This document shows, in pieces, positions 11,443 through 48,900 of a DNA stretch of 64,000 nt; position 1 is the first letter of the stretch; every line of letters starts with the position of its first letter. A program made the position numbers and the translations under genes. Source of the DNA: Lepidodermella squamata (Eukaryota; Animalia; Gastrotricha). Where the stretch lies: the NCBI GenBank assembly GCA_047495785.1, contig JBLDXI010000020.1, positions 2,480,001-2,544,000 on the forward strand, read 5' to 3'. Under the pieces are notes generated by a model. It worked only from the letters and a program-made list of their open reading frames with translations, did no database searches and was not told the origin of the DNA.

Positions 11443-14400
11443 TCAACCGCGCCTAGGTGGCGGCGGGGGTGGCGCTGATGACGTGGGCGGCATATTCCTT
11501 GGAGGCGCCCTGGGTGGGGGCGCAGGGGCCGAATCTGCAGTCGCCCATGGATCAGAAGGTGGAGCTGGAGGCGGCGCCCTTCGAGGCGCCGGAGGAGGAG
11601 GAGCCACTGCCGCATCGAAGCCATTCCCATTTTGTTCGAAAACATTCGCGTAGTGATGCGATTCAGCAGGGGCAGCGGGAGGAGGCCGAGGGACCGCCCG
11701 GGTAGGCACTTGAGGAGCTCCAAAGTTGTCATCAGGCCACGAAGTCGGCGCAGGCGCATTCGACTCCGGTAGTTGTGAGGTACCCCATGGATCATTTGAA
11801 GGGACAGCCGGAACTGGGGCAGGCGGTGGGGCTCTTCTAGGCGGAGGCATAGCTGCAGGACTTTCATCGGGCCAGCTGGTAACAGGCGCAGCTTGAGCCG
11901 CTAATGATTGCGGTATCGATGAAGGATCACCGACATAGAACCTAACAACAAAACAATCGTTTCATTATTGCCAATAACAAAATAAATTTCGAGGCAGAGT
12001 GCCTAATTTTAGGGCTGGAATCTCATTGGCAAATTTAGACCCATCAAAAACTCCAAAATACTAAATTTCTCCAAAATTATCCTCTAATTCGAAAATAAGG
12101 TGACAAATGAAAATTCATGTCATGACTCACGTGTTGGCTGCTGGAGTGCTAGGCGGTTCAAAATCATCCATCAAATTCTGCCTGGGAGCTGGAGGTGGCG
12201 GAGGCCTCGAGGGCGGCGGAACCCGGGCTGGTGGTACAGCCGGCGCCGAACTAAAATCGCCAATAAGGCTTGGCTCACTCTCACCAGCCATCTCCAACAA
12301 CTGATCGATCGACTTCGAAGATGTTACCTTCGACGGCAAGGCAGGTTTGTCATCACTTCCAGCGCTTTCAAACAACGAATCATCCAACGGAGCGTTAGTA
12401 TGCAACACGCCAACGCTAGTTAGCTTGACGAATTTCGTCGTTTTCGGTACACAAGGCCGGTCTTGAACCACATAAGGCGGTTTCACGTCCATAGCAGGCC
12501 GCGATATTGAGACTGGTAAAATGAACGAAGAAGACGGCGACATGCCAGGCTTTTTCGCTTGAGGCGGCGGCGGGCGGGGTGGCGGCGGTGTTTTCGCGGC
12601 ATTCCGCAAATTTTCCGCCGATTTCGACGGATGCAACGTATTCTCAGTAACAGACAGAAAATTGTCAATTGCTTGGTCGTAATTGACCTCCGAATTATCC
12701 GCAATCGAATTCGACGAATCAGTACCGCGAATGCCTTCATCGCTATACTGACTTTCAGTATCGTCAGGATAGGGCGATTCACTGCCAATCAAATTAGCAA
12801 CTTGAACAGGTTCCGCCAGTAATTTGTTAGCGAAAAAGTCCGGGTATTCTTCCGAGGTCGACGCAACGACCTTTGAAACAGCTTCAAACCAGTTCGAATT
12901 GATAAATTTCGGCTCGATTTTAAACATGGTATTAGTGCGCAATTTCAACGCATCGCCGGCTTCACGCGTGTCCGTAAAAGTAACGACCGCCTTTGAATTC
13001 ACGTATCTCATCACCGAAATTTGCCCACAGCTGTTAACAATCATTCGAATATCACTCGCATCAGCCGCTTCGGCTTGGTCAAGCGGTGTTATAACAACAC
13101 TAGCATCCAGCGGGCCGACTTCCTTCAAAAAATTCGCGACCGTTTGCTTCATTTTGCGTTCATCGATTTGAAACACGTCAATGTCAAAAAGTGCGTAGAC
13201 AGGCCGGTGGTCGGATGTTCGCAATTCAGCGCGGTTATACAGCAATAACCGGCCGCTATTCCACGATGCTTGTTCTTGATTAGCGAGAGATTCGTCGACA
13301 TAGAGCGGGCGACGGGTCCACAAAATGCGATCCGTCCACGCTGGGACGCGATTTTTTTCCGACGTATCGTAATCGTCTGAGAAAATATCGTACTTGTAAG
13401 TGGGCGCAAAGTCAATATTGCCCTCGTTGAAAGTTGACAAAACGCGCTGCCACGTCGGCAACTGATCGGCATCGCCGCCCTGTTCCTCGACGAATTTATT
13501 CAGCGCCTCGTGCGCTTTTAAACACTCGAGACGCAGTTGTTCGTAATTCGATAATTCGCGGTACTGTTTAGCTGCGACCAAATCGCGGACTGTTTGATTC
13601 GCTAGCTGACCGATTCGATAATTAAAATCGCCAAAAAGAAACACATAGTCATGACTCCAAACAGTCCGGCCCTAAAAAAGCAGTAAGAAAAAATTAACTA
13701 TAGACTAACAGAAAGAAAAGAAGAAATAACACTCGGCAACTAATTCAATATTTCAAGCCAAATATTGGTGAAAAAGCGTCAAAAAAACAACGATTCAACA
13801 GACTCTAAATTAACTGAGTGAGAAATTAATTCTAAAATGTGCTTACTCCACAACTTTCCTGATCATTCAAAATGTTGAATATTAAATATTAATAAAATAT
13901 TAAAACTAATTACTTGAGGGAATGATAGGCGATTTGCGATTTCAGCTAGATCAGAATTTCGATCTGAGACTTTATTTTGCCCGGCTGCTAAATGACCGCA
14001 AACAAAACAAATCGAAGAACCATGAAGTCGGAATCGAACTGATACGCCGCCTTTATTGCCAGTTGCACCGCCTAGGCCAGTTTTCACCGAGCTGACAGCA
14101 ACGTCCCTGATGATTTAATTATTAGCTGAATTCATCTAATAATTAGTAGCCTCATACCTGAGATAAGGTGCCAGCTGGGGGCGAATGAAAACAATGAGGC
14201 AAACCCCGACCAGTTGGATACTGGCTAAATAAATGTACTGCCGATCAGGAGAGCAAGAAATTGTCTTGAGAAGACGTTGAGCCCAATCTTCTTGATTCTT
14301 GGTACTACAAGGTGGAAAAAATGGAGTTATTGTTTTCGTTTCAATTTATGATTTTTTGCATTAATTACTCTGCTGAGACAATGTTTTGCGCATTCAAGTC

Positions 14401-16809
14401 AACAATCTCTTGAAATCCGATTGCATAAATATCAACGGGCTGTGAGTAGTCTTTGCCGGGGTCAATGAGTTCAGGCCGGTCGCGGCGTGTCGCTTCGACG
14501 AAATCGGTCAGCCAGTCATTGATTGAATCCTCCTTATAAGCGATCGATCGCGTCCGCTGCCCGCCATTCACGTTCCAACTGCCGACAAACACGCGCAGCG
14601 GGCGCGGATTCGAATATTGCGGATAACGCAATATTAGCTCGCGACACAGCCATATAGGCGCTTTATATTAAAAAGGAAAAAACACACGATACAAGTGAGT
14701 TTTCTAGGCGAATAATCGATAGAAATAAAATGCGAAGCTTACAATAAGGAGTATATTCTTGAATGTAGGCAAACGATCGATCACCCAGTTCCCCAGTAGG
14801 ACAACCACTCTTCAGAATCATATGAATGGCCGAATGCTTAGCCGAGTCAAGAATTCCGGATTGAACAGCTCGACTCGCAGAAGTTGCGACATCCGCGTAC
14901 TAAAAAATTACAAAATTACGAGTAACTCGAAAAAATCAAATTATTCATTTTCGAAAAAAACTGGGACAGAAGAAGTAAATTTTGGTAAAATTATTTGATA
15001 GAATTACCTTCCCTTTGCCGCCCAGCATCGCGCTTGTACCAGCGTAAATTCGGCTGCAATGGTCGCCGTTAGCAGCCCACATTTGTTTGAGAGCATCAAC
15101 AAAATGAGTCCGATTTGATCGACTAGAACGTTCATTGAGATGAAGAACACCGAGTTGCGTTTCTAAAACCTGCGCCGCTATCATCGATTGAACAGCATTC
15201 GTTCGATCCAAGCAATCGATGCAATTTGTTCGAATAACACCAGTTTGTTCACTGAGGAATTATAAAAATTGAGTGCTAATTCGAAAATCGATTTTTTTTC
15301 ACTCACGTTCTGACTAAACCATCCGCATAGTGAAAAATGCCGTATTTAGTGACGGCTGACTGAAGCCGGTCCCACAATTTAGGCAAGCACTTCTCCTGGG
15401 CTCGTTTCCATTCGGCGTGAAAATCAAAAGCGATGTGATCAGTATTTTGAAGTAGGGCCGAGCATTGATGATGTTCCTGGTACCAGGCATTCAGCGCTGA
15501 CTCATCGCCTTCGCAAATCAATTTCAGCTGTTTCCGACTAGCAGCTGCGAGCAGGTTAACTACAGTTAACTCTTTGTATTGTTTAAATAGCCGATAGAAA
15601 TGACGCTCAAAGGCTGGCGCACAGGCTTCGAAACCGCGAGAAAGACGAACGTAATGTTTACCAAGCTAAAGATATGAATAGAATAGATTAGATTAAATTA
15701 AGAAAAACAGCGAAAAATTAGCAATTGATGGAAATAGATGATTTATCTGAATTTCCAGCACCAAGCTTTCCAAGCTCCGATTCTAAATAATACTCACGTC
15801 ATGACGCGACATCAGGTTACTCAAAATCTTCATGTGTAAAGGGATAAATTTCATCAAACTATTCTCTCAACAGCGAGTTATTAAAATCATATTCTGGAAA
15901 GGGTAAAATGCCTAATATTTCACTCACATTGTGACCAACTTGTTCCCATAGCAAAGGAACCGAGCCTCGAATCTGAACAAATGACGACAGTTCCGACTCA
16001 TCTTTGACAATCAGTTGTTCAGTTTCGACGAAATTCGCCACATGGCCAACATCATTACACCCACGGCAGCTGAATCGCGTCCCAGCTCGTTCGCAAGATA
16101 GCCTCGAAATAATCAACACTCGAACAGCGTTGCTGTCAACGTAGACTGTTCGCATTTCAACCCCGCCGCAAATTACACGAACAAGCCAGTCGGATGTGGA
16201 CGAAATTCCGGATGATATGAAGGGAAGCCAGAAGTTTCTGTTCCAGAAAAACGCGCGGCTCATCGGGTCTAAAAACGGTGATGAATAAGTCGTTTGAGAA
16301 ACAGTTTGCCGTTGAATCGACCGAGTGATGTCGTAATTCGATACAGTCGATGGGCAGAAATAGAAAAAGCCAGAGCTGAGAAATTTTCGCACCTCCGACA
16401 AATAATCTGGGTCGTTTTGTTGCTTCGATTTTGTCGATATCATATTAACGGCACTGATTTTGAAAATTTCGGCCAGTGAAAACTTTCCGACATGCGAAAA
16501 TCCCGTGACCATAACCAGCCAATCTTGACCCTCAGCGAGCGAAAAAACTCCGAGGCAAGCGTAGGCATCACTCAATTTTTCGATGGTGTAGCCGCTTGTG
16601 AATCGAAGAGCATCAGTTTCTTCCTTAGCTGGAAAATATATTTCAATAATTTTGGTTAAATAGGAAGTCAAATTCGACTTACTAAGCTCTGTAATGGTTG
16701 AATTAGCGAATAAAAGAGCTTCTATGCTGTCCTTCCGCTCCACAATGAGCGAATACGGAAAGCCTGGTCCTTCCACGCTGCTGACCACAAAATTTCGTGA
16801 AAGCGACAT
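11443..16809 (-). CDS. SYNJ1: Synaptojanin (Sac1 + inositol 5-phosphatase + proline-rich tail)
   Basis: Sac1 motifs [33 protein letters not shown], catalytic CIDCLDRT. 5-phosphatase motifs [33 protein letters not shown]. About 10 exons; last exon 11941-11443. Confidence 0.95.
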
Positions 16810-16957
16810 CTAAGTTAATGTGAACTAAAAAAAAGAATAAACGGTACATTGCAGACAACGAAAAAAAATCAGTTTTGATAAGACTTGGAAAACCATCAAC
16901 GGGTCATTTCAATGAGAGCAAGGCAGCAGAAGTCTTTGAGCAAACACAATTGAGCTT

Positions 16958-18610
16958 TTATTCCTTCGCAAAGGCGACTTTGAAAGCTTCGATCGCGCGT
17001 TTTCTAGCCATATCGTGGTCGACGATTGGTTTAGGATAGCCAAGTTTTGCGAAAACACCAGAGGCCAGCGCGTGAAAAGGATCGTGAACTGTATTATTCT
17101 TCAACGAGGCTAATTCAGGTACCCATTTTTTGATATAATCGCCAGCTGGGTCGTTCTTCTCACTCTGAAGTTTCGGATTGAAAACCCGGAAATATGGCTG
17201 GGCATCGGTTCCAGTCGAAGCCGACCACTGCCAACCGCCGTTATTCGACGCAAAATCACCATCGATCAGATGTTTCATGAAATAAGCCTCACCAAGCCGC
17301 CAGTCAATCAACAGATCTTTCGTCAGAAACATAGCAGTGACCATTCTCACTCGGTTGTGCATCCACCCGGTCGCGTTCAACTGCCGCATACCCGCATCGA
17401 CGATCGGATAACCGGTTTTTCCTTCACACCACCGCTGGAAATTTTCGGGGTCGTTGCGCCATTTCACGTAATCAGACGAGATCTTGAACGGTTTGCCGCG
17501 AACAACTCGCGGGAAAAAGAACATCACATGACGGTAGAAATCACGCCAGCATAGTTCGGATATCCACGTGACAATGCCCTCATTTCCAGTGGTGATTTTG
17601 CTAATTTTAGGCGGGTCGTCCGATTTCGGGTCGGACTTGATGCCAGCAACGATGCACTCACGTACTGAAACAGCACCGATTGACAAATAAGGCGAAATGC
17701 GGCTCGTGCCAGGCTGCGCCGGAAAGTCACGTGACTTTTTGTAGCCAGCTGACTTTTCGAGGATAAATTTGACTAGAATCTCCTTTATTTCAGCATTTGA
17801 TGCCGGCCATTCTTTACGAATTGTTTTCGCGTAGTCAGGGTCTTTCATCTCAAAACCTTCGACAGATTTAGGCACTTCTTCTTTTTCAACAGATGGGAAC
17901 GGCTTGCACACGTTTTTACCGGGCGGTGGCGATATTTTCAAGCATTCTGGGTTTGCTTCGATGTATTTGTACCAGGACGAACGGAAGGGCGTGAAAACAG
18001 TGTAAGGCTTTTGTTCTTTAGTCAAGATGCTACCGGGCTGGGCAATGCATTGATCGTGAGTAGGATGGACTGAGATTCCTTTCTTTGACAAATAATCGTT
18101 GACGTACTTGTCTCGAGCAACTTCATCCACTTCGTATTCGCGATTGAAAAATATGGCAGACGCACCGATTTCTCGACATAGCTTGAGCAAGATTTGAGGG
18201 GTGAGTTTGCTATCAGTTGAGTCTTCTTCATCTCCAGAGGGTAGCTTATCAGCTGGTTCGCCGTTATAAACTCGAGGCAAAAACGAACCATGGCGAATGT
18301 ATAGAGGAATCGCGTAGTTGTTCCATAGCTCTTTCTTCAACTCGGCCAGAGTTCGTAGAATCAAGTCAACCTTACAAGGGGCTAGATCATGGGCTCGATA
18401 CTCTTTTTCGGCGATGACGTAAACAGCAGCAACGCCTTTGCCGTTAGAATGAAGAAACGCGTTATGAAGAGCTGGATTGTCATTCACTCGTAGATCTGTT
18501 CGAAACCACATCAAAGCTGGCCCGCCGGCACTATCTGAAGCATCAGATGCCTCTTTCTTCAAGCGCTTCTTCTCGTGACCACCATCTTCGTCGCCAGATT
18601 TGCCAGGCAT
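16958..18610 (-). CDS. phr: Class I CPD DNA photolyase, copy A (canonical active site), intronless
   Basis: WFRTDLRVNDNPAL, YTVFTPF, TSRISPYL, WISELCWRDFY, GKTGYPIVDAGMRQL, GWMHNRVRM, DGDFASNNGGWQWSASTGTDAQPYFRVFNP. First ATG at 18610 (the ORF track starts at a TTG). Confidence 0.93.
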   Translation of the reverse strand: MPGKSGDEDGGHEKKRLKKEASDASDSAGGPALMWFRTDLRVNDNPALHNAFLHSNGKGVAAVYVIAEKEYRAHDLAPCKVDLILRTLAELKKELWNNYAIPLYIRHGSFLPRVYNGEPADKLPSGDEEDSTDSKLTPQILLKLCREIGASAIFFNREYEVDEVARDKYVNDYLSKKGISVHPTHDQCIAQPGSILTKEQKPYTVFTPFRSSWYKYIEANPECLKISPPPGKNVCKPFPSVEKEEVPKSVEGFEMKDPDYAKTIRKEWPASNAEIKEILVKFILEKSAGYKKSRDFPAQPGTSRISPYLSIGAVSVRECIVAGIKSDPKSDDPPKISKITTGNEGIVTWISELCWRDFYRHVMFFFPRVVRGKPFKISSDYVKWRNDPENFQRWCEGKTGYPIVDAGMRQLNATGWMHNRVRMVTAMFLTKDLLIDWRLGEAYFMKHLIDGDFASNNGGWQWSASTGTDAQPYFRVFNPKLQSEKNDPAGDYIKKWVPELASLKNNTVHDPFHALASGVFAKLGYPKPIVDHDMARKRAIEAFKVAFAKE

Positions 18611-18729
18611 AAAATTCAACAGTTTGTTCAAAAAATCTACGGCCAAAAACAAGTATAGATTCGTTGCATCTCAATATCATACGCACTTTCTGCATATTCT
18701 CAAAACAACCAAAAATAACTAAATAAAAA

Positions 18730-20307
18730 TTACCACCGTTTTCCCGACTTTGGTCTAAAAGCATCTTGGGCTCTATTTCTAGCAACTTCGTGCTCAACCA
18801 TAGGAGCCGGGTAGTTTAATCGAGCAAACTGAGCCGGTGAAAGTGTCTTGTGTGGGTCATGAACGTGTTCATCGCTTAGTGAAGCTAATTCAGGTACCCA
18901 TCGCTTGATGTACTGCCCATTTCCGTCGTACTTCTCGCCTTGAAGCTTAGGGTTGAAAACTCGATTCGGTCGAGGGTCAGTTCCACTGGAAGCAACATAT
19001 TGCCAACTGCCGTTATTCGAAGCAAAGTCCCCGTCGATTAGATGCTTCATGAAAAAGGCTTCGCCCCAACGCCAATCAATTAGCAGATCTTTAGTGAGAA
19101 AACTAGCCACAACTTGCCGAGTCCTATTATGCATCCAACCAGTTGCAAGCAGCTGTCGCATGCCAGCGTCAACGAATGGGTAGCCCGTTTTACCTTCACA
19201 CCATCGTTGAAATTGCTCAGGATCATTGCGCCACTCGACATAATTTGCAGAAGGTTTCAGAGGTTTCCCCTTACACACATGGGGAAAATTATGCATTACA
19301 TGCCGAAAGAATTCTCGCCAGCATAATTCAGATATCCAGTGAACAAGGGCCGGGCTGCCATCAGTAATCAAATTGATGTTTGGAGGACTGACAGCACCGG
19401 TGCAAATGACTGCTCGGATGCATTGACGGACAGATATACAGCCGATAGATAGATAAGGTGACAAGCGACTAGTGTTCTTAGCAGGAAAATCGCGAGAAAC
19501 ATTGTAGTGAGACAATCTTGTTGTGACGAAGTCGTTTAAGAATGATCTTGCCGCATTCGCACCTGGCGGCCAGTATTTTTGCACAGTAGCGAGAAACTCG
19601 GAATCGGGAGGCTCAAAACCATCGAGCTTATCAGGTACTTCGTCGGGTGACGGAGGAATTGTGTCAGGATTTCTGCTCGGAACGGGGGAGACGTTGAGAC
19701 ATTGCGGATTATCTTGAATGTATTTGTACCATACGGTTCGGAAAGGGGTGAATACCGTTAGAGGCTTTTGATCTTTCGATTTTATTGTACCAGGAGGGGC
19801 AACACATTGATCATGGAAAGGATGAACAGAGATTCCATGTTTCGTCAAACACTCCGAAACGTATTTATCACGCACAGCTTCGTCATACTCGTATTCGCAG
19901 TTGTAAAAGAGCGATGTAGCACCAGTTTCGCGGCACAGTTGCAAGAGAATTTGAGGAGTGAGCCTGCTGGCACTGGAATGTATCGCTTCGTTGCCATCGG
20001 GTAGCTTATCAGCTGTTATTTTGTTGAAAACTCGCGGCAGAAAAGAGCCACTCCGAATGAAGAGTGGAATTGAATGATTCTCCCATAGCTCTTTCTTCAG
20101 CTCCTTGACGGATCGCAGAATAAGGTCGACCTTTGCAGGTGAAAGATCATGCGCGGCCCATTCTTTCTCTGCAATGACGAATACAGCAACAACGCCTCGG
20201 TCAGCTGCGTGAACGAAGGAGTTGTGTAAAGCAGGATTATCGGCCACACGCAGATCACTACGGAACCACATCAACGAAGGACCTTTCATCAGCTTTTTAG
20301 CCGCCAT
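18730..20307 (-). CDS. Class I photolyase paralog, copy B, with CRY-DASH-like substitutions, intronless
   Basis: Collinear with copy A (WFRSDLRVADNPAL, TSRLSPYL, WISELCWREFF, GKTGYPFVDAGMRQL) but has NRTRQVVAS and NNGSWQYVASSGTDPRPNRVFNP. Confidence 0.9.
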   Translation of the reverse strand: MAAKKLMKGPSLMWFRSDLRVADNPALHNSFVHAADRGVVAVFVIAEKEWAAHDLSPAKVDLILRSVKELKKELWENHSIPLFIRSGSFLPRVFNKITADKLPDGNEAIHSSASRLTPQILLQLCRETGATSLFYNCEYEYDEAVRDKYVSECLTKHGISVHPFHDQCVAPPGTIKSKDQKPLTVFTPFRTVWYKYIQDNPQCLNVSPVPSRNPDTIPPSPDEVPDKLDGFEPPDSEFLATVQKYWPPGANAARSFLNDFVTTRLSHYNVSRDFPAKNTSRLSPYLSIGCISVRQCIRAVICTGAVSPPNINLITDGSPALVHWISELCWREFFRHVMHNFPHVCKGKPLKPSANYVEWRNDPEQFQRWCEGKTGYPFVDAGMRQLLATGWMHNRTRQVVASFLTKDLLIDWRWGEAFFMKHLIDGDFASNNGSWQYVASSGTDPRPNRVFNPKLQGEKYDGNGQYIKRWVPELASLSDEHVHDPHKTLSPAQFARLNYPAPMVEHEVARNRAQDAFRPKSGKRW

Positions 20308-28663: not shown

Positions 28664-31600
28664 TCAAAGCCGCCAGCAATAAGGCGAGGTGCTGGCCATA
28701 ACCATACGCTGGGCTAAATCGGCGCCTGTTTGCTGGTCGAAGTTCGACTGGCTTGAGAACGAGCTGAAATGCTGTTGTTGCTGCTGTTGCTGTTGAATTT
28801 GCTGCTGCTGCTGTTGATTTGTAGGTTGCAAGTAGCACTGCGCCGTTTGCTGTTGTTGGCCCTGCTGACCGCCCCGGTTTGATGACGAGGACGAAAGCGA
28901 GGCGAAACCAGCAGCAGCGGCGGCTGATAGCTGATCGGCATACGTGTTATTAGCCGCCGATAGCATGCAGTGGTACGAAGACTGAGCCGCGTGTTGGTTG
29001 ACGGCTTGTTGCACCAACATCGACTGCATCATGCCGGCACCAGCGCCCGCGCTCCAGTTCGACCCGGCCGCCGTCACGCTTGGATCGGCACTCAAATTCG
29101 TGTAGCTGTACAACTGATCCGGCCGGACTAGCGAATTTGTCGAGTTGTAAAACGGACTCGCCGCCGCGGCTGCTTGCATGAATGACCCATTTAAGGTGGG
29201 TAGGAATGATGAGGTCGAGCCAGCCATGCTTGGCGACGGCTTCGGTTGACTGGCCGCAGCAGCAGCCGCCGCAGCTAGAGCCGCCGTTGAAATGCCGCTG
29301 TTTCTCGCCGCTGAATTCAAGTCGTTAGCCTGCTGCTGTTGTTGGTTAGTTGATTGCTGCGGGTTCGAAGTGCTACTACTACCGCCTGAAGAACTGGCGC
29401 CGCTCGACGTGCCGCCGGTGCGCTGTTGTTGGCGCAGTTTGTCCTCGCGGCGCCATTTCGCGCGCCGGTTCGAGAACCACACCTGGATGCGCGCCTCGGG
29501 CAGGTCGATTTTTTGCGATAGGCGCTCCCGTGCGAACACGTCCGGATAGTGGGTGCGTTCGAATTCTTTCTCGAGCGCGTCCAACTGCTCGGCCGAGAAT
29601 GAAGTGCGGTTGCGTTGAAGTTTCCGCTTCAACCGCATTCGCATCTGCTCCTCCTCTGTCGCACCTTCGTTAGGAATGCTGTCGCTATCGGAATTGCTGT
29701 CATCGTTTAGCAAGTCTAAGAAAAAAAAATCAAGCAAAATTATAATCAAATTGTAAATATATGATTGGATCGTTTTCGGCAAAAAAATAAACTAAATCTC
29801 CTATTTCCTTGATCCTAGACCATATATCAATTCAAGTTACTGTTAAACGATTTCCAGGTTAGAATTTCATATATAACGTCTCTAAATTGATTTATTTATA
29901 GCCTAAATTTCCAAAAATGCTTAATGCATTTTTTTCAAGTTAATAGCTAAATTAAAATGTTTCTAATATTTCAAGTGAAAGGTCAAGTGCTCTAATATAA
30001 ATTTGAAAATCTCAATACGAAAGAAAAATAGCCTAAAGGGTTTCGTGCTTCTCAATTTTTCAATTCTTTAATAGAATTAAGCCCCGAAATTTTTTTTTTC
30101 TTCATTAATTTGGCGATGGTATTTTTTATCAAAGCCCTGAACTTCAGAAGCAACGATAATGTCTCTCATTTATATTTGACTTCACCGTGAATTCGCCATT
30201 ATGCCCGGATCTGGGAGGTTTCGCTTTAATTTCTCAATCCTTTGACTTTTTGGCATCATGACAAAATTTTATAATCATTTCACATTTCAATATTTACATC
30301 ATGTTTCAACTGCCAATTATAAACAGGTATCTAAGATTTGCCAAGGTTGAGCGAGCACACCTGCCCGAGCTTATGGACGCGCGAGGCGATAATAATAATA
30401 ATGGCAATAATGTTGTACTCTACCAGAGTATAATAATACACTGATGACGACTGCTGGTCGCGGCTTTTCGGACGACTGGCCAGGCGCGTGACACGAATTG
30501 CGCAAAACGTGTCAATGATCTTGCTGGCGTTGGCGTCGCGCAAGTATACTTGGCGCAATTTAAACCACACTCATTTCACGCCTGTCAATGTTTGCGCCCG
30601 TGTTTCCGTTCAATCAGTCGTCTTCATGTTTCGGAGTTCATCATTTCGAAATTGACGCTGGCGCAACTTCCTTCCCGCGCGTAATAGAGCTTATATATGT
30701 AAGTATGTAACAACGATCTGGCGATGTGTATAGCTTCGAGTTTTACTTCCTGGCGATTTAGTATATATAGAGACCCCTCAAAATCTGTCATAGTCAACAT
30801 TTCGCGGCGCATCACGCGTGAAATTACATTTCGCGTGTTCGGCGACCAACCCAATCATCGCACGGCTAATCAGGCGCGAATATATAGGCAAGGCACTAGA
30901 TAATATCGATAAGCGCAGCCCAGCAGAAATTTTTCACGCATCACCAATTTTTTATGATTATTATATTGTTTATTATTACACTCATAGCCATGTTTTGTGA
31001 TGTCGCGCGCTGCGCCCCGGAAATTAGATCGTGTCGAAAGGGAGCCGCGCCCGAAAATGAGACGACGATAAGAAAAATGTGCGCTGTGTCGCGATTTTAA
31101 GGTGACTCAAAGTTGACTCGCAGCCGTGTTCGGTGCAAAGTCTTCTGAAAGCAGGCGCTGTGACGAGACGACACCCGAATAAGTGCACCGGTTTACAGTT
31201 TTGGCGTGTTTATAGCCTGCTGTCATATAAGAGGACACTTGTCTAATGACATTCTAACGCTCCTTTTCAGCCCTTGACAAGAGACACGCGCGCGCTTTCA
31301 TAAGCCGACTCTATTCACGGGAGATGTTTAAACTTTGTAATCCACGGCCGCTAGCTATATACCTATATAGATTGTCCCGTTTAAGTTGCACCCGGCCGTT
31401 GGGGCAGGGGGTCTCTTTCTTCGAGCTCCCGCTACTATTGTCGGTAAAATAATAAAAGGTAACAACTATCAGGCGGATTACACGCAGCTCGACCTTAAAA
31501 CGGGGTAATTACACTCGACCCGCACCCTAAGGTGTGTGAAAAGCCTCAACTCAAAACGTACCGTCTTTGAGAATTTTGCTGCCTGTGCCGTTTTCGATGC

Positions 31601-36929: not shown

Positions 36930-39900
36930 TTATGAATCCAAGCTCATGAGCAAAGCAGTACCGCGTTTCACCCAGTGATCAGCCGGGCGCTCGCCCGATT
37001 TCAAATCAACCGCCACGACGTAGGACGCGCGACCATTGCGGCCCGCCCTGTTCGGGAAGTAGTAGCACGGGCACGAGTACACGCCTTTCGTAGCCTTTTT
37101 GCGATTTTCGACCGGCTTGAAGTTGATGACAGGCATCGGGCACACGAGCTGCATTGGCGCTGCTTCAATCAGCGTCGATGCTTTGCGCTCCCAACCAGCG
37201 CCTTGCAGGTACAAGCCCCTAACCAGCACTCCGTCCTATTGAAAAATGGAGGGAAAAATCCATTAATTCAACAATAAAAATGGTAAAATTAAATTACAAC
37301 AAATAATGTGCATAAAATTAACGAAATTAGAGCGAGTGCAATTTTCATCTATTTAGTACAAGTTTCCGAGGTGCCCATTCGTCGGGTAAAATTGTAATTT
37401 TGCGATACAGGCTACTATTTAATTTCAACTACAAAACTTTACTTTTCCAATCTCCTGAAGTTCGTAAAATCGTGATAAAAAAATCCGCAATTATTAGTGA
37501 ACATTATTCTCAGAATAATTCACAGGTAGTATAGCGATAGTTGGCACACTTCTAAAAGAATACTACGACAAATGCTTTGACGTGATCGCGCAAAATCTTG
37601 GTTTTTTTCCAGCGGCACTACGAATACACCAAAACAACATCTATTACGACGTTTTTTTTTACCCTTTTGCTTTTCTCCAATTCTTCCTGTCAAGCAAAAT
37701 CGAGGATAGCAAAATTAACGAATAAATCGATATAAATTAACGAATATAATTGCAAATTAAACTAAAATGATAGGGATGTTTCAAACGAATTCGAGGGTCA
37801 ATGACAGACTAAGTTTCAAACGAGACGCTTTACCTGCTGTTGTTGAAGCTTTTTAGCCTCCGCCCGTTTAACGGCAGACGGCGATTTACCCTGCGTACTT
37901 TCAACTACTTCCTCCTGCTGTTTTCAAGGCATTAATGTGAGAAATATGTTAACAAAGCGTTAAATGTGATCACAAAAAGAATTAAGACTGAAAATTTAAC
38001 AATATTCACCTTTGGAATCGGTATAGCATTCAGATCGTCCGTTGTTTGAACCGTAAATTCCCAACTCAGAGTATCGATGGAAATCTGAAAAGAAAAAAAA
38101 CCAAGTTTTCCCAGTCAATGATTTTTTTTAATAATTTACGCCGTGGAGACGGGCAGATGACTGGAGCACAGCTGTCAAGAAGCCAGTCGGGAATGTGAAG
38201 GCCGAAATCCAGAAGAACTTCGGGGGTCGCGCTGTTCCGGCCCAAGTTGCGAAAAACTCGACGCGCTGAACTAAATCGCGAACCCAAGATGCAAGAGGCT
38301 TCATCGATGGATAAGCAGTTTCCCACACGGGTGGTACACGGCCGTCGTACATGCACTGGAATACCGTTTCCAACTCACTGGACATCACCACAAGACCTGA
38401 AATAACCAAAAATTATATGAAAAATGTGGTAAACTTTTTTAGTGCAATTTTTCTCCCTTCGTGAAAAATCACCTTATTACATAAACATATTTTTTATTCA
38501 ATTCGAGCTGGAAACGTTAAGGAAATACCATTGGACTAGTTTTCGGTTGATAAAAACCGAAAACGGGGTTCCGAAACCTTGCCATCATTTTCCGCTTGGT
38601 TATTGGTGAAGTGCAAGGGCCTCAAATTAAAAAAAACTCGAAAATCGACCTAAACCTAAGCCTAACATTAACCATGAACCCTAACCCCAACCCTAACCCT
38701 AACCCTAACCCTAACCCTAACCCTAACCATAACCCTAACCCTAATCCTAACATCGACTCCCAACCCTGGCCTCAACTACTAATCATCGCTTTGCTGGAAG
38801 ACATAATTTTATGGAAAAATATGTACGAACGGTTAAATTTCATAGCTAAATATGTATGAAAGAACACTCTTTGATTTTTTAAATACCTTGAATGCCCTTA
38901 TCTAGATCGATCAAAGCTTTCCGCATCAGACGCAGAAGATTGTTGTAGCGCTCGATTTCTTGAAGGAGGACGACGTTAAGTGGAGATGGGTCATTTGATA
39001 GCAATTTAAGCGTCTGTTCGTAGTCGATATCGCCGGGTAGTTGTTTGAAAATGGTCTGCGACAAATCTCGAACTTTATCCTCTCGACTTTGCCCCTCGCC
39101 TCCGCCAGTCCCACCGCCCGTCTGCGGTTGAAGCGACAGCAGGGTCTCGAACAGCATTCGAGATTCCTGAATTTGCGACGCGATATCAGCGTTAGGATGC
39201 TGGCCGAACGCCTCGGGGTGGTCAGTTTGCGGTAACATGCTGATGTACTCCTTGTAGGAGGCCAACGGGCCGTCACGTGGGATGTAGTAGTAGGGCAGCG
39301 ATGACAGTTTGTAGAACTGTTCTTTAACGCAGGCATCGCAGTAGTAATCGTTGATGTAGGTCATCAGCAAACGCCTGTCCCAATCATCAGTCACGTGACC
39401 TCCGTAATTGATGTTCGCGATCAGGTACTTCAACGCATCCCACGCCGTTTCTTCGTACTCGTCCAGGTAGATGCTGAGCAGGGTTTCCGAGACGAGGAAA
39501 TCGGCGTCGTTGAACTCGTAAACGATATTCCAGCCGAGGTTCAAAAACTTTTTCCTCTCCAGCAGCACAGAGTGGAAGTAGCAGAGGGAGAAGAGCAATT
39601 TTCGATACTTGTCCGGCTTGCGGCACTTCGCGAACATTGGCTCTGAGATCAAGTTGTAAAGACGTTTCATATTCGCCTTCAAACCCTTCGGCGGCTCGGT
39701 TGTGATTTTGATTGAAGATTGCAAGATTGCGATGGGGAATTCGGGGTGAGGGGCGGAGCTTAGCCACAACCGGAAATCAGGGTGAGGCTGGGCTGATTTG
39801 CCCTGCAATTGATCGATAATTTTGTCGAGCTGAGGCATCCAGCTCAGCGATAGATGGCAATTAGCTAAGAACACCCAGTGGCCGCGTTCTAGACCATCTT

Positions 39901-42900
39901 TGATGTACCGTGTGGCGGTTGGCGCCTGGCCCTGACCGAGCGACAGAGAATGAAAACGTTCGAACATGCCGCAGGTTTCGGCCAATTGAATCAAGGCGCT
40001 AGTTGGGTCAACACCAGGTGACAGCACGAAAATAAGCGGCGTTCGAGACGTAGAATCGTCCAAAATCGATCGCTAAAATTAAAAAAATTAAACCTAGAAA
40101 ATTCCTCCTTAAGAAAAATTTACCATGTCCAAAATAGGAGGCTCAACGTATTTCGAGCCCAGATTGTTGACAATGAAGGCGGTTACACAGAATGAGACGC
40201 GATCAGGTCGCAGCGATCGAACAATCAACATTTTTTGCAATTCATTCGCCGCGTTGTCCCATTCGCCTGGCAGCGATGCTTTTTCCGGCTCAGCGGCCGT
40301 GAACCATTGATTCCAATCGCGGGTATGCTGCTCGAATGACGCGATGATTCCGTGGAAATTCGGCAACTTTTCCAGCTCGGAAATGTTGTCCCAAGCGGCC
40401 TCGGGTAGCCAGGACGAGCAGGGATTATCGAGTTGGTTCTCCTTATCCAACACAATACCGCCGCGGAGGAAGAAATTGTACTCTTCCATGTTAAGTTTCC
40501 CGGCATTTTCTTGAATTCTCGCGCACATATGAAACGAGAATAGCAGCTTATGGCGTTCGAAAAGAGCTCGGCACGTGAATCGATAAACTGCGAACGTGTG
40601 ATGGTCGTTCAAATTAACGATTCTCTCCTCAAGTCTCGGGCTTCGTTTGCTCTTCTTGATACTCATCCTGAAGAGATCAACGTAAGAATCGAGCGAGAAC
40701 TGGTACATCGGATCGATTTGGCCCATGTCGTTGAGTACGAAGAACAAAATCGAGGCACGAGTCGCCGAAGACCGGTAACCCTCGCGGGCAGCGTCGATTT
40801 TCGTCTCCGTCTGCTCGGCGGTCGCGAGTTGTTCCGAAACCTCCTGTGAGGTCTGTTTCGAAGTCTGCAGGGTGTTCACGAGGGTTACATCGTCTAGCAA
40901 CGAGCCCTTTGTTTCGTTGAGAAGCCGCAAAATCTCGTCTTCCAACTCGACCAACTTCTTCTTGCCAGCAGCGATTGACGTGACTAGCGTATCTTTCTGC
41001 TGTTCCAACTCAGGCCGCTCCTCGCCGACTACGATACCGAGTAACTGAGCCTCAAGGCCCTGTTCCTTGATCGCAAAGTTGACAATGGTAGTTTTGGCTG
41101 CGACCTCAGGCGCGTAATGCGGATTGCTCAACTTTGTCGTGATATAAAACCTGAAATTCTGGTTATACTCAATTTCGTTATCGCCGATTTTGATCATCGG
41201 AACACCGCCGATTTTCACTATGGCCTTATTCAGGATCGGGTCAAGTGATGGGTCGAGTTTTTCCTTCACGTTCTGCAGCAATATGGCTTTACCCATGCGA
41301 ACAGCCATCTTAATGCGTTCGAGGTAGTCATTCATCTGCAAATCGATGATCATTTTGTCGTCCAGTTGCTCCATGTTTTTGATCCAACGCATTGCCTGGC
41401 CCTGCGGATCGACCATTAACGGCCAGCGACGGCCTTGAGTGACAATAATACCATTTTCGGTACTAAAAATAAAAAGTCAAGAATTATTCTCATTTTTAAA
41501 TTGAAAAATGAATCATGAATTTTTTTAAAATCTCAAAGTTCAACACAATTTTTATTTAAAAATTTATTTAAAAAATAAGATTTAAAAACATTTTTTTTAA
41601 TTCAAATTGTTAAATTTAAAATTCGAAATAAATTTCAACAAATTTGAATAATAGGTTTTTAAATCTTAAAATTGTTAAAATTTAAGAGACTCACCTGAAT
41701 TCGTCACTTGGCAACTTTTGAATGTTCCACTCTCGAACAAGGGTAGGTTTGACCATGAAAGTCGTAAGATCAAACGTAGCACTGCATGGTAGGCCGAGCT
41801 TTCGAATCTCGACAAGCCAGATTTTCTGCAACATTTCCTCTCGGTATTCCGACAAAAACGGGCCCATATACGACAGGAAACCCGCAGATAGAAGGCAATC
41901 GCCGGGTAAATAGCCCATTTGTTCTTCCAAATCAGCCACAGTGGCAACCCATCGTTGGTATTCCGATGATAGACCATCGACCAATTTGCTAGCTCGATCT
42001 AACATCATTTCCGTGTACTCCGACTTTTTGCGTAATTCCTCCTTTTGAGCCAATTTTTCCTCGTATTGCTTTTTCAGTTCAGCCATCCGGTTTTCGACCT
42101 CGCGCAGCTTGGCGTAAGCCTCGGCCAATGCGTCCTGCTTCTCTTTCAACGCAGACATGGCCTGGTTGAGGCGCTGGCGTTTCGGCTCGACGACACGGTA
42201 AATGCGACCGTACATTTCCATAGCGCGTACCCAAAGACACAGCGATCGAGCGGCATTAGACACCTTACCGACGATTTCAGGGTCGAAGTCCTTCTGGGCC
42301 ACGTACTGCCCGATTTTCTTGAGAACACGGTCTGAAATGTTGTCTTTCGGGAAATTTACGAGCTGTTTAATGAAATTAGGCTCGCTGAGTTGACGCTTAG
42401 CTTCAGCCCATGTCGGTTCGCCGTTACGCAACACCATCACAGCTTCCATGACCTGATTTGAAATGAGAAAAAATTTGGTAATAAAAAGTAAAAAAGGGTG
42501 AAAAATTTCCGCGACAATGGGATAATGGCATTTCATCATTAGCCGACCGCAGTCGAAATTTCGATTTTCGAATTTTTTAAATTCTTAAAATTTTCAAATT
42601 TTCAAATTTTGAATTCTCTGATTTTTAAATTTTTAAATTTCAAATTTTCGAATTTTTGAAAAACCTGAGAAATTATAAATTTCATGTAGAAACTAACCTT
42701 TTCGACAAGAGGAGGCGGTTTCGCATACGATTTAATTTCAGTTAAATCGTTCTTGTTCAGCGAATTCAAGGCATCCATAGCAGCTTCGAGAGCCGGCATC
42801 GCCTCTGCGAGATCAGACTGAGCCAAATCGGCCAACTGCTTGCATTTGTACTCTTCCTCGCCGATTTTCTCGCTCTTCTGCTGCACAGCCTTTTGCTGCT

Positions 42901-45900
42901 CGTCAGCCTCACGCTTTTGCTGAACCAACACAACCAAGTACTCCTCGCACATTTTCTGAAACTGAGCCACCTTCTGCTTGTCCTGCTCGAGTTCAACACT
43001 CATCTTCGACACTTTATCACGCGTCTCCTCAATTTTACCGAGACCGTTTTTCAACTTATTCGCAGCTTCTGACAGCTCTTTCCGTTTCGCGTACAGCAAA
43101 TCTTTGTAGCCAATTACGAGTTCGAGGTAATTGGTGGGCGTTACGTAATTTTGCCGTTTCAACTGCGCAAACATTTTGCGCGACATTTCGCCTACGCTCG
43201 AGTGCATAAGCGCGAACATTTTCGCAATATTCGGCTTCAGCCGCTCTTCATCCTCATCTCGCATTTCGATGGTCTGAACGTACTTATCCGCGACTTCAAG
43301 CAACGCCTCGGTCGGCCATTCCGTGAATAAATCAATAGTCGTGCAATTTACAAAGGCTGGGTATTGACGAATTCGGTTCCTGAACGCCTCGCCGACTGGG
43401 CTCATCGCCAGCACGACGTGAAGGTTCGCCCGGATACGGTCGAGTAGATACGTAAACATCGCTAGAGGGTTATCTTCAATGTTGTCCTTCTTCGCGTCAT
43501 CGGCCAGCTGATTTTTCACATCCTCAAACTCGTCGGCCTTGTACAAATTCGGAACTTCGCCCGAGCTCAGGACGTTGTTGATGTCTTCAAGGAAGGCCTC
43601 TTCAACCACCTGCATGTCGGTGAAAAGGAACAGGGTCGGTTTGTTCTCGACACCGGCCAATAGGTACAACCGTTTGATGTCTTCGCGGAATTCTTGTTTC
43701 CGGTAATTTTTCGACACCTCGATCTGGAAGACATTGTAGTAGCAGATAAAGGCGGCAAGGCGGGTTAGACTTTGGCGGCCCGAACCTCCGATACCGATCA
43801 GCAACATGTTGCCTCGTGGTTGCCGAATTACTCGTACAATTCGAGCAACTGTGAAATTAAATAACAAATTTTAATAAATTTTAAATTTCGAAATTTTCGC
43901 TCAAAAATTAATAAATAATCTAAATTAATTAAAAATAAATAAAATTCATCCACTAACTTATTATTTATAAATTTCATGAATAAAATTTCAACTCACTGTG
44001 CTCAATCGCATCTTTGAACAAAACAAGATCCATTGCAACAATGTTCGGCGAATTGTTGTACTCATCCAACACGCCCTGCATGTGTTTCTTGAGCGCCGCT
44101 GGGTTTTCTAAATCTTCGTACAGCTCATCCGCATTCATGAAATCACCGAAAACCGGCGGAACGCGGTTCTGGCAAATGTTGTGGTACGTCAAATCGAACA
44201 TGATGCCTAGTTTTTCGCTCAAAATTCCAACAAAGGCCTCGCGATCCTTCTCGCCGACCAAACGGTCGCAGAACACGCGGAAGCACTCGTGAATCCAGAG
44301 ACGGACGAAAGCTGGTTTCGATTCTTGATACTTCTTACTAGCCCGAAGTAGACCTTGGAATACCTTCGAAATGTCTCGTAAATTGAACAAGTAGTGAATT
44401 TTCGTGGGTGTTGGCAAGAATTTCGACACAACGTTGTCGTACAACTCGATAGTCGCGTCTGTTACAATAGGCGCCAAATTTTTCACTTCATCCTCGAAAT
44501 CGTGGAGTTTCTGCGTAATCATCGAGCCGAAAATTCGCTTCAATTGCGACTCCTGCGGGAAGGTCATGTTGATTAAATTGAACCGGCTCTGAAGTCGCTG
44601 AGAAATCTCCTGGCGACCACCTCCGGGTGGGCCCATCGCTGCCATCAGCAACATGTCCTTGACCGAGACAACAGCCTGAGTTTTCCGGTTGTACCAAAAG
44701 CCGTAGTCGAGCCACATTCTGATCAACTCTAGCGGAGGTTGAGATCCGTACCGATCCTTGACCGGCATGTTCAAATCGTCGATGAGGGTCAACATTTTCT
44801 TACCACCGACCGGGACGAACACGCCCTTACCACGCTTTTCAGTTCGAGATTCAATAATGTCCTGAGTGTTGTTCGAAGTCGTTTGCGCGGACATATTGAC
44901 GATGAGAACGGTGTACTTCTCCAGGTCGAGGCTGTTCACAACAGACTGAGCGACTGAAGTTTTACCCGTACCAACAATACCGACCATCATAACAGGGTAC
45001 GCACGGGAGATTAGGGTGGATACTAGGTAGTTGTATCGAACTGTGTCAACAGTTGGCACGATAATTTTGAAAAATGGAACGTTCGGGTTGTATTGCCAGG
45101 GTGTTTTCAGCTTTTCGTCCCAATGCAGCCAGCCGTGAGTTTTCGGGTCGACGAAATACTCGTAAACTGCGTCCTTATTCGGGAAGGAGGATTCGATCTC
45201 GCGGAGGTATAGATCAATCTTCTTGCGGCCTTCTTCATTAACCGCAGCTAGAACTGACCAAATCAAGCAGAATAAGAACCAGTTTTCGACAGTTCGCTGG
45301 AAATTGTCACTATCAGCCGGGTCGACGCCGTTTTCAATTGTCATGTAGCACTCAAGTAGTCGGCACAGCGAGATGACGCCGTTTAACTCAGGGATCGGAA
45401 CCAACTCCTGGCAATTCAGGCGTTTGAATTCCAGCATTCGAGGCAGCCATTTGTCGAAAAGCCGCTTCAGCTCCTCGACCAACACGACCTGCCCTTCAGC
45501 TGTCCGCCGTTTAAGCCACGACTCGACGTAGGGCTGCCAGCCAAGGTCGACGTAGTCGTTGAAGACCATGCCGCAACGTGAGACGGTAGCAGGTGAAGCG
45601 ACGGCCAAATCGCCGACTTCGAATAGCAGGGAAACCTGTTCAGGCATACCGATACGCTCACCGTTGACTAGGGTCAAGATTTTGTTGTCGTCCATGACTG
45701 AGTTCATGTTTTCAATCCAAACAGCGTCAACAGGACCGTCGAACAAAATCCACTTCTCCTCGGATGTAGCAGCTAAAAATTAATACAAAAATTAATAATA
45801 TATCAAAAAAACGAAATTAAATAAGGTAATATGGATATTAAAAAATTATAATTGCTTCAGGAAATTAGTGCCATTGTGCTTATCGAATTTCCAATCTCGA

Positions 45901-48900
45901 ATTGAAACTTACGATTTCTCACAAAATCTTCAAGTTTAATCAAAATTTACTCAACGCTCAAAATTTTGGCTGGAATCATAAAACGGAAAAGGAATTTTCA
46001 ACTTACATCCGCAAGTTTGGCGCATAATCGTCGACAGGATACCATCAGTCCATTCGCTTGAAGCCAGATCGAACTCACCGTAAAGCTCGCCCATAGACAC
46101 GGCTTTAGGGTTCATCGGATACTCCTTAACTGAGTTAAAGCCCGGCTCCCCGGCCTTGGTCAGCCTGGTTTTGGTCGCCGCGAGCATTTTCCAGGTAACC
46201 GATTTACCCGACAGAGTTTTACCGACAATCATGACTGAGTGACGCGAGTTTTTAGTTTCGAACAGTTGAATAACCTTCGTGATCATATGCTTCGTCGGGA
46301 TCAGATTAGCGTCATTCATTTCGGCGGTAATAGCCTCGCGTAACTTGGCGTAGTCGACAGTCGGAATTTCAACGCCAGGGAATAAATCCGAGACAATGGC
46401 GTTGAAAAGCGGCAAATCGACCGAAGTCAATTTAGCGACGTTCATGTCCCTCATAGCCAGCAGAATAACCTCGTCGTCAGGCATATTTGGCAGATCTCGC
46501 TTTTTGCGGCCACCGTAGCGTAGCAGGGACGTAAGGGCACGCAGACCGAAATCGTAATGGTCTTGTTTCGACAACTGCTGGACGGCAAGGGAGTAAAGGG
46601 TGAAGACCTTTTTAGCCAAGCCTTTGCAATTGCTGAAGCCTTCGCCGGATAGGATGATTTCAGCAATCATGTTCGAATCTGGCACGACCATAGCAATCGG
46701 TCTGAACATAGACTTCAAGTTATCAGGAAGTTCAGTACGACCTGAAATAATAAATTTAAAAGAATCAACAATTCATTTTCCTATTTTACCTGCATAACCA
46801 GGGTTCATAGTGATGAAAATACCGCAGGTGTGAGTTAACCGAATTTCCTGACCTTCGAAGACAAATTTCGTTGAATGAGCAGAGAGGGCGCTCAGAATCG
46901 ACAAAATTTGCTGGGCGACGACGGACAATACCTCAATGTTGATACGATTAAATTCATCAAAGCAACCCCAGGCACCAGTTTGCGCCAGGCCCGAAAACAT
47001 ACGGCCCATTGACATGAAATCAAGACCCTCAGAGCAGTTGATAACGATGACATACATCCCTAAATTTTTGCCCAAATCCTTAGTTGTCTCAGTTTTTCCG
47101 GTACCAGCAGGGCCTTTTGGCGAGCCACCTTTATGCAAATGCAAAGCTGTGGTCAAAGTGATGTAGCAACGATCGGTAAGCGGCGTGATGACAAGTCGAC
47201 CCGAATTTCCCAGGTACTCATACTGGTAAAACGTCGAGGTAATTGTTTGTTTAATCACGCAATCGTCGTCCTGTTTGTCCCAGTAGAATCGCAGCTGAGA
47301 GTTCCACTCAAACGCGTTCGGCTCTTGAATGCCAATTTTGTACATTTTATCGACGATATCGCGCTGATGAACTTCGATAGTGACCATCGCCACGATTTTC
47401 AACCGCTCAACTTTGTTCAATTTGCCTCGAATCGCCTCGGAGTATTTGTTCAACATCGAAATCTGCCGCTTTTTCACACTTCTCATCGGTCTCCGGTCAG
47501 ACATTTCCTTGCAGCGACCCAGGGCTTTTGTAACATCAGTCGTCCATTGAATTTGGCTGGCGGTTAGGCAGAGTTGGCCAGGCCATTTTTCGTCCCGAAT
47601 CCATTTATCTCGCTTATTCAAGCACTTTCTCAGCTCGTTTTTGCACTCGCGTAACCGATTTCGCAACGTGTCTTGCATCAAAACTTCGAGTTTTGACAGC
47701 CAAACTTCAACTTGACCTTCCATAATCAAGACTGAGGTGAATTCAACCTTTTCACCGTCACCTGATATCATGACAGTCGCCTCTTTCCGCTGGGGTTCGA
47801 TAACCATTTTAAGATCAAACAAATTGTCGAACAGTTTTCGTAGATGAGGACGAATTGTTTCTGGGTTTTTGGCTTCGCCCAAAATTTTCAACAAATCATC
47901 GTTGGAAATGAAGTAGAACCGTGGGAAAGCTTGGCGTTTAGTTTCGAGGTAAGTACTCAACGCCTTATTGATATCTTCCAACCTTCGATTCATCGCGATG
48001 AGCTGTTTCGCAATGCCAGGTCGATGGGTTGAACGTTGAGCGTTCCTTTCCGCATTCGTTTCAGTCATAATTTTTTTCCACTCAGCGCTCAATAGGTCGA
48101 ATTCTTTAGTCTCGCGAGGTAGTTGCTTGCGAATATCTTCGCCCATGAAAATATTTTCCAAGTAGATCCATTGCTTTTGAACCTGGAGCAAAGCATCGAG
48201 AACGTCCATAACTACGGTGAGAGTTTTCTCCCAATGCGTGACTTCTTGCTCGAAAGCTTTCACGAAACGGCTAGATTTCATCTGCGACAGCTGAGCCTGG
48301 CCATCTTCAAGCGCCTGAGTGACTTCATCGGTTGAAACGAGTTTGAAGTGGCCCTTGTCTTTGTAGGGCAGCACCTGCAGGGTGAGACCCTCCCAAATTT
48401 GGCGAATATTCGCTAGACCGACCTCGATGATGTACTCCTTCGAGGCGGCTCCAGACAGTTCAGAAATGAAATCGGCATATTGATCGAAATTATTTCCAAT
48501 AATGTATTCCAGGGTGTACTCGTCGGAAGCTTCGTCGAAGAACTTGTTCATCTCATCCTGTTTTGGTTTAAATTAATTTTTTTCAAAATTCAATTAATAA
48601 TTTTACCTTAATTTTTTGCCAGTGACGGGGTCGCATGGCTTTGTTTTTCAAGTCCTGGATGAGGGGCATAGTTCGCCTGAACTGGTCAACCTTCGCTTTA
48701 GAAATATCGACGATTTCCCAGTTCTTCTCTTTCAGCTCTCGGCTGAGTTTATGCAACTTTTTGAAAATATCCGATGAAATATTCTCCATTTGCTTGGTTT
48801 GCAAATCCGCAAATCGGCCAGACTTCCATTCACCCCAGTATTTTTCCCAATCAGCCGTCAGCTGCCAAACCAGTTCGATTTGTTCCAGCTCCTTTTCTAG

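Follow-up and report, generated by a model that had tools for sequence, protein, structure and literature searches.

The lesion pocket of a class I photolyase encoded in the gastrotrich Lepidodermella squamata carries residues characteristic of CRY-DASH proteins, which it appears to have acquired by convergence. The gene, here termed copy B, lies in a 64,000-nucleotide stretch of contig JBLDXI010000020.1 (positions 2,480,001 to 2,544,000; hereafter the window, to which all unprefixed coordinates refer) and is an intact open reading frame (ORF) of 525 codons on the minus strand (18730..20307). It is arranged head-to-tail with a second minus-strand photolyase gene, copy A (listed as 16958-18652, up to a TTG at 18652; 16958..18610 and 550 residues if read from the first ATG at 18610), and the two products are 63% identical over their full length. 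We are quite confident of the core of this account, namely that copy B is an old, intact class I duplicate with a faster-evolving, B-type flavin adenine dinucleotide (FAD)-binding domain and a convergent pocket, and that the convergence has an independent replicate. The whole explanation, which adds a proposed shift in substrate to the class I duplicate with its convergent pocket, has in our judgement an even chance of being correct.

Residues were numbered by alignment to Escherichia coli photolyase (PDB 1dnp). A preliminary description of this DNA had contrasted the active-site motifs of the two copies, and that contrast is confirmed. On the minus strand, copy B carries NRTRQ (19114-19128), GSWQY (18997-19011) and a DNA-ridge loop, TDPRPNRVF (18955..18981), all within 18930-19135, where copy A has NRVRM (17342-17356), GGWQW (17225-17239) and TDAQPYFRVF (17180-17209). 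Gln398 of copy B (codon CAA, 19114..19116; ATG in copy A) corresponds to E. coli Met345 and to Gln395 of Arabidopsis cry3. In the stretch S434-W435-Q436-Y437 (18997..19008), Ser434 occupies the position of Gly381 (Asn in DASH proteins), Trp435 is the retained tryptophan-triad residue Trp382, and Tyr437 (TAT; TGG in copy A) stands at Trp384, a position held by Tyr in DASH proteins. Finally, Phe334 (TTT, 19306..19308) replaces Tyr281; Phe is found here in 96% of the DASH set described below and is shared with P0002, the B-type protein of a related species. Hence, at four positions with a conservation of 95% or more in class I enzymes (Met345, Trp384, Tyr281 and Gly381), copy B has Gln, Tyr, Phe and Ser, and its Gln398 and Tyr437 match the DASH pocket pair (cry3 Gln395 and Tyr434). 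The pocket residues Glu274, Trp277, Asn341, Met345 and Trp384 of the E. coli enzyme are equivalent to Glu325, Trp328, Asn391, Gln395 and Tyr434 of cry3, and Met345/Trp384 versus Gln395/Tyr434 are the sole two differences among these five key residues (PMC5812317). Together with the 1dnp alignment, this equivalence bears out the original proposal that the Met345 and Trp384 positions of copy B hold the DASH residues Gln and Tyr. An assembly error as the source of these residues was considered and is excluded by agreeing contigs from three public runs (three studies), which list no alternative letters or indels at the pocket codons.

Such residues are rare in class I enzymes. We scored them from full alignments of 475 other class I-type proteins, comprising the 120 nearest to copy B, the 119 closest to its pocket segment, 147 representatives of an exhaustive search and the neighbors of a later-found variant. 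At the Met345 position, 469 of the 475 proteins have Met and three have Gln; at Trp384, 444 have Trp, 22 Phe and six Tyr. Gly381 and Tyr281 are Gly and Tyr in 463 and 461 proteins, respectively. Besides copy B, a single protein among the 475 combines Gln with Tyr; it also has the Ser, and it stems from an independent eukaryotic tandem pair (see below). Across 57 columns that are at least 95% conserved (in approximately 384 class I proteins), copy A and P0001, the A-type protein of the related species, depart at none, while copy B departs at four, Y281F, M345Q, G381S and W384Y (residues 334, 398, 434 and 437 of copy B). All four departures fall among the eight of these 57 columns in which the DASH consensus differs, and three are to the exact DASH residue; the hypergeometric probability of this placement is about 2e-4 by our own, post hoc arithmetic.

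These counts bear on the idea that the DASH-like residues reflect an ancestral state or are widespread among the closest class I relatives, or that copy B is an ordinary DASH protein, to which we assign next to no probability. Met345 is present in 119 and Trp384 in all 120 of the nearest homologues of copy B, and all 120 database proteins closest to its pocket segment are class I enzymes with Met and Trp. Met, Gly and Trp are also the residues of copy A, P0001 and every outgroup. When class I-like proteins were scanned by pattern for Gln in place of Met345, solely one GC-rich, bacterial-looking clade emerged, and it keeps Trp384. Members of this photolyase clade are encoded on fifteen Joint Genome Institute (JGI) metagenome contigs (L123-L137; GC 56-68%) and carry the motifs WMHNRTRQ..ASFL and GGWQW..GTAPDPNGNFRVF.

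Profile scores, solved-structure sequences, fold and tree all place copy B with class I photolyases and not with DASH proteins, in line with the earlier view that it is a paralogue of copy A and no full-length DASH. Both copies contain the Pfam domains DNA_photolyase and FAD_binding_7; in copy B, matches to PF00875 (5.8e-37) and PF03441 (4.5e-79) correspond to the N-terminal α/β and C-terminal FAD-binding helical domains of the class I architecture. Against NCBIfam models, copy B scores 434.7 bits for class I (NF007955), 352 bits for 8-hydroxydeazaflavin (8-HDF)-type enzymes, 269 bits for plant cryptochromes (cut-off 604), 226.2 bits for DASH (TIGR02765; cut-off 317) and 46 bits for class II. 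The cut-off of the class I equivalog, 506 bits, is missed by copy B, and also by copy A (470.8) and P0001 (483.4); the threshold was set for bacterial PhrB, and since even the canonical copy A falls short of it, copy B is not singled out. By comparison, the ten reference DASH proteins that were run against TIGR02765 all reached 355-622 bits. Among sequences of solved structures, copy B matches 1dnp best (350 bits), followed at a distance by Synechocystis DASH (178 bits) and Arabidopsis cry3 (145 bits). Similarly, a Foldseek search with an AlphaFold2 model of copy B (pLDDT 94.7, pTM 0.94) returned 1dnp as the top hit (TM score 0.91) and then class III and cyanobacterial class I enzymes, with the DASH structure 1np7 13th and cry3 33rd or lower. 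In the tree, copies A and B share a clade within class I (support 100/100). For comparison with DASH proteins, we assembled 78 full-length ORFs from bacterial and archaeal genomes via a back-translated NRGRQ.V.SFL pattern; as NRGRQ.V.SF is fixed in this pattern, together with a codon of Leu or Phe type, Gln is present in 100% of the set by construction, and Gln395 has independent support (PMC5812317). At 16 class-discriminating columns, copy B shows the class I state in 11, the DASH state in three and another residue in two. The homologue counts, the profile score and these diagnostic columns together refute both an ordinary DASH identity and an ancestral state of the Gln and Tyr residues.

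The catalytic residues of copy B are those of a photolyase. The tryptophan triad (W359, W412 and W435, equivalent to E. coli W306, W359 and W382) and the FAD-N5 asparagine (N431, equivalent to N378) are retained, as previously noted, and E327, W330, N394, R395 and R397 match E274, W277, N341, R342 and R344. In addition, all FAD-binding residues, Asp372/Asp374 and the core residues contacting the cyclobutane pyrimidine dimer (CPD) are kept. Because the FAD-binding residues, the triad, Asn378, Glu274, Trp277, Asn341 and Arg342 are all present, copy B most likely retains photolyase chemistry. We consider it improbable that copy B is instead a cryptochrome-like light sensor or regulator with little or no repair activity. 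The Trp384-to-Tyr exchange also occurs in plant cryptochromes, copy B lacks the nuclear-localization-like motif of copy A, and L138b, a parallel variant from another lineage, has lost the Glu274 and Trp277 equivalents, all of which would fit such a sensor. However, copy B has kept Glu274, Trp277, Asn341 and Arg342, as well as Asn378 and not the Asp or Cys of signaling cryptochromes; a C-terminal extension is absent, and the score with the plant-cryptochrome model lies far below the cut-off.

The ridge loop must be read differently from the pocket pair. Its Asp-Pro-Arg (DPR) motif and one-residue deletion had initially been taken as a DASH signature, which did not withstand comparison. The loop of copy B is one residue shorter than those of copy A and the E. 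coli enzyme, equal in length to those of Anacystis nidulans class I photolyase and DASH proteins, and it aligns without gaps to the A. nidulans structures 1owl/1tez. A short loop occurs in 110 of the 475 class I proteins, and the DPR short loop in 107 of the 119 proteins nearest to the pocket segment, which are cyanobacterial 8-HDF class I enzymes; the closest relatives of this segment, class I photolyases of cyanobacteria, read ASSGMDP[RK]PLRIF here and without exception have Met and Trp. The DPR short loop is thus normal for cyanobacterial 8-HDF class I photolyases, which are repairers of duplex DNA, and is not specific to DASH proteins; for the loop, and for the loop only, this frequency speaks in favor of an ancestral state. 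Residues K401-P402-L403-R404 of the A. nidulans enzyme correspond to R443-E444-D445-R446 of cry3 (PMC7610064). At these positions copy B has R-P-N-R, keeping the photolyase proline and exchanging the hydrophobic Leu for Asn.

The DASH-like residues could have arisen by convergence or by segmental recombination, both of which had been envisaged from the start. Our best reading of the sequences is that they arose by point substitution and not through acquired DASH sequence. Over residues 386-456, copy B shares 80% identity with both copy A and P0002, compared with an average of 55% and a maximum of 63% for the 78 DASH proteins. Seven DASH-diagnostic columns within this segment (385, 391, 393, 416, 420, 426 and 440) show the class I state in copy B; of these, the class I-diagnostic E416, M420 and G426 sit between Q398 and Y437, interleaved with the DASH-like residues. 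P0002 already has the Tyr281Phe and Gly381Ser exchanges and the Asp-Pro-Arg motif, and lacks the Gln, the Tyr and the loop deletion, indicating stepwise substitution. A chimera, in which a DASH gene segment recombined into a class I gene, is by contrast highly improbable. It would draw on a tree of residues 380-460 that, with the trait columns included, places copy B beside the DASH stem (74/87), an unsupported position in a segment of 80 residues that is too short to reject placements. When the eight trait columns are left out, copy B nests with P0002 inside class I, although an approximately unbiased (AU) test on the remaining 74 columns does not reject the DASH placement (p=0.30). For the whole protein, a clade of copy B with DASH proteins is rejected (p=0.002). 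Thus, convergence gains from the interleaved class I residues, the 80% identity to copy A and the replicate described next, and recombination with a DASH gene is the part of the initial proposal that has become unlikely.

P0110, the sole Gln variant among the 120 nearest homologues of copy B, comes from eukaryotic contigs on which its gene precedes that of a second photolyase, L138b, by 19 bp. This tandem pair (L138:1987-4974; also L139:6001-8442) lies beside MyTH4-type myosin genes, and Met345Gln is found in both of its copies. The downstream copy, L138b, matches copy B in the entire set of Met345Gln, Gly381Ser, Trp384Tyr, TDPR and short loop. The group containing L138b clusters with a protein from the fungus Umbelopsis (100/92), separately from the quartet formed by copies A and B, P0001 and P0002 (100/99), and the hypothesis that all variants form one clade is rejected (p=4e-14). 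As judged from these sequences, a second eukaryotic tandem pair of class I genes gained the Gln/Ser/Tyr/short-DPR-loop set on its own. P0271, also of the L138b/P0110 group, likewise lacks Glu274 and Trp277. A further group known from Logan assemblies (P0243, located at L140:937-2508, P0422, P0430, P0462 and P0473) shows Trp384Tyr in a DASH-like WQYGAGVG context with Met345 kept. Some of these proteins also carry Gly381Ser or Gly381Ala, and the sister of the group is a canonical clade that contains P0075 and its relatives. The L138b and P0243 groups show that class I paralogues have shifted toward the DASH state at these positions more than once.

The closest relatives of the gene pair, P0001 (A-type) and P0002 (B-type), are encoded by tandem genes of a metagenome contig that precede a synaptojanin gene and lie among other animal genes. 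The species they represent is known from two metagenome contigs (L001 and L002) and was the only related one found; a protein-based scan of JGI metagenome contigs returned no close relatives of copy B. A tree of the FAD-binding domain pairs copy A with P0001 (96/89) and copy B with P0002 (100/99), also when the trait columns are left out (95/88 and 100/94, respectively), and a grouping of copy A with copy B is rejected by an AU test on all columns (p=0.0004). This pairing indicates that the duplication is older than the species split. In a whole-length tree without trait columns, grouping of copies A and B is again rejected (p=0.03) and grouping of copy B with P0002 is not, with the caveat that, at weak support, the tree itself has (B,(A,P0001)) to the exclusion of P0002; the N-terminal-domain tree leaves it undecided whether copy B groups with copy A or P0002. 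The proposed orthology of copy B and P0002 thus rests on the catalytic domain. Synonymous divergence (dS) is saturated between all copies, at nonsynonymous divergence (dN) of 0.24-0.47, so that between-species dN/dS is not computable; saturated dS with such dN values indicates long-term purifying selection. Unique changes in the FAD-binding domain number 20-38 in B-types versus 4-17 in A-types (about two to eight times as many), and the N-terminal domain shows no such asymmetry. The gene order is swapped between the species, reading B, A, synaptojanin in the window (15859-20307) and A-type, B-type, synaptojanin on the related contig (L001:3341-8186), with one orientation throughout; as a guess, differential loss from a longer tandem array would explain the swap.

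Taken together, copy B is an old and still intact duplicate of its class I CPD photolyase neighbor, and its lesion pocket was remodeled in the window lineage at positions that separate class I from DASH enzymes (Y281F, M345Q, G381S and W384Y) along with a shortened, more polar ridge loop. It most likely still works as a light-driven flavoenzyme that splits cyclobutane dimers. In cry3, an exchange of Gln395 to Met gave a computed electron-transfer coupling comparable to that of the wild type (PMC7610064). With a more polar pocket and a less hydrophobic wedge loop, a dimer flipped out of the duplex would be held less well by copy B; copy B may therefore prefer lesions in single-stranded or unwound nucleic acid, or serve as a weaker back-up. 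Copy A, with its nuclear-localization-like motif, would carry the bulk of duplex repair. A shift of substrate preference in copy B, first proposed as neofunctionalization toward single-stranded DNA or RNA, is the tentative component of this model, possible yet somewhat doubtful. A bolder version, in which duplicated eukaryotic class I photolyases repeatedly and independently underwent an adaptive switch from duplex to single-stranded or unwound nucleic acid by building a DASH-type site on a class I scaffold, strikes us as rather unlikely.

Several observations weigh against such a shift. Why DASH proteins act on cyclobutane dimers only in single-stranded or looped DNA, despite a chemistry like that of photolyases, has been called obscure (PMC7610064). 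Giving the cry3 loop the residues of photolyases failed to bring back repair of duplexes (PMC7610064), and duplex DNA is a substrate of some fungal DASH proteins (PMC10056346). Pocket residues therefore do not reveal which substrate is preferred. In L138b, the same pocket changes accompany the absence of Glu274 and Trp277 and hence a probable loss of CPD chemistry. In addition, the B-type P0002 has kept Met345 and Trp384, so that a B-type enzyme persisted without the DASH-like pair; the Gln/Tyr pocket is thus a late, lineage-specific trait, and the two-enzyme system suggested in the preliminary description is not a conserved design. Finally, strain or allele differences in public runs comprise 24 synonymous and no nonsynonymous changes in copy A versus five synonymous and eight nonsynonymous changes in copy B (Fisher p=3e-5), and pN/pS of copy B, at approximately 0.47, is indistinguishable from neutrality (p=0.19). 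Recent variation in copy B is compatible with relaxed constraint.

The same variation, the persistence of Met and Trp in P0002 and the excess of unique changes in B-type FAD-binding domains would all be expected if copy B were a redundant duplicate under relaxed constraint, with pocket changes that are tolerated losses of fit and copy A doing the repair. We regard this alternative as unlikely, but as a serious contender. It has to contend with an intact frame of 525 codons and with saturated dS at dN of no more than 0.47 against every relative. Furthermore, relaxed constraint would have struck only four of the 57 most conserved positions, all of them DASH-discriminating and three of them changed to the DASH residue, and the identical Gln/Ser/Tyr triple occurs in an independent lineage. 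All eight nonsynonymous variants, moreover, map to residues 86-318 and none to the FAD-binding domain.

At 18341-18464 (copy A) and 19820-19929 (copy B), most or all of the three public runs contain, besides the reference form, alternative contigs that carry four or five differences. The changes are five synonymous ones in copy A and, in copy B, C153Y and K148R plus two synonymous ones, one of them in the K148 codon. These contigs may represent alleles or a second genomic copy.

Copies A and B are separated by a spacer of 119 bp in the window (18611-18729) and of 94 bp on the related contig (L001:4967-5060), and spacers this short are compatible with co-transcription. The N-terminal extension of copy A contains a nuclear-localization-like basic motif, KKRLKKE (18551..18571, minus strand), identified by motif match only; the K-R-x-K motif is found in both A-types (copy A and P0001) and in neither B-type (copy B and P0002), a difference that hints at different localization of the two enzymes. 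The window also contains synaptojanin pieces (Syja_N, Exo_endo_phos2 and DUF1866; 12127-16809, minus strand), a homeodomain ORF (28664-29782, minus strand), long exons of an axonemal dynein heavy chain (38879-50763, minus strand) and an ORF of 905 residues with a reverse-transcriptase domain (58369-61086, plus strand), which mark it as part of an animal genome. With 41-46% identity, the closest named relatives of the two photolyases are from Phycisphaerae bacteria and early-diverging fungi, in contrast to the animal-type flanking genes. This fits an origin of the gene pair by horizontal transfer, which we consider probable.

We found no paper describing a diverged class I pair in which one pocket is DASH-like. 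At the positions that the family conserves most strongly, copies A and B differ only in pocket residues that separate the two classes, and a second lineage made the same substitutions. The pair, together with point mutants, therefore constitutes a small protein set for asking whether pocket residues alter substrate choice. If the adaptive switch were real, copies A and B, 63% identical and with four differences at top-conserved positions, would provide a natural minimal system for DASH single-strand specificity; if copy B were merely a drifting duplicate, it would be an instructive case of parallel substitution. In either event, a repair gene that was probably acquired horizontally has diversified inside an animal genome.

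Compared to known class I CPD photolyases (E. coli PhrB, 1dnp; A. nidulans, 1tez/1owl), copy B shares the two-domain architecture, the best sequence and fold match and the catalytic residues, as well as the loop length of the A. nidulans enzyme. It differs by Met345Gln, Trp384Tyr, Gly381Ser and Tyr281Phe, by Asn at the equivalent of A. nidulans Leu403 and by a class I score of 435 bits, below 506. With CRY-DASH proteins (cry3, 2j4d/2vtb; Synechocystis, 1np7; TIGR02765), it has in common the Gln, the Tyr, a Phe at Tyr281, a polar residue at Gly381 and a D-P-R loop of equal length. In contrast to these proteins, it shows the DASH state in only three of 16 diagnostic columns, keeps the Pro402 equivalent and lacks the acidic Glu-Asp pair in the loop. 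The independent variants resemble copy B to different degrees and form separate clades: the group of L138b, P0110 and P0271 includes in L138b the same residue set in the same tandem arrangement, while the P0243 group keeps Met345. Horizontally acquired photolyases have been described in Panagrolaimus nematodes (PMC6889759), and class I CPD photolyases in some nematodes and in Nematostella (PMC9498864). Like the acquired photolyases of small desiccation-tolerant animals, the present pair consists of microbial-type class I genes embedded among animal genes, here encoding synaptojanin, axonemal dynein and a homeobox protein. Unlike them, it consists of diverged tandem copies that predate a species split, one of them with a remodeled pocket.

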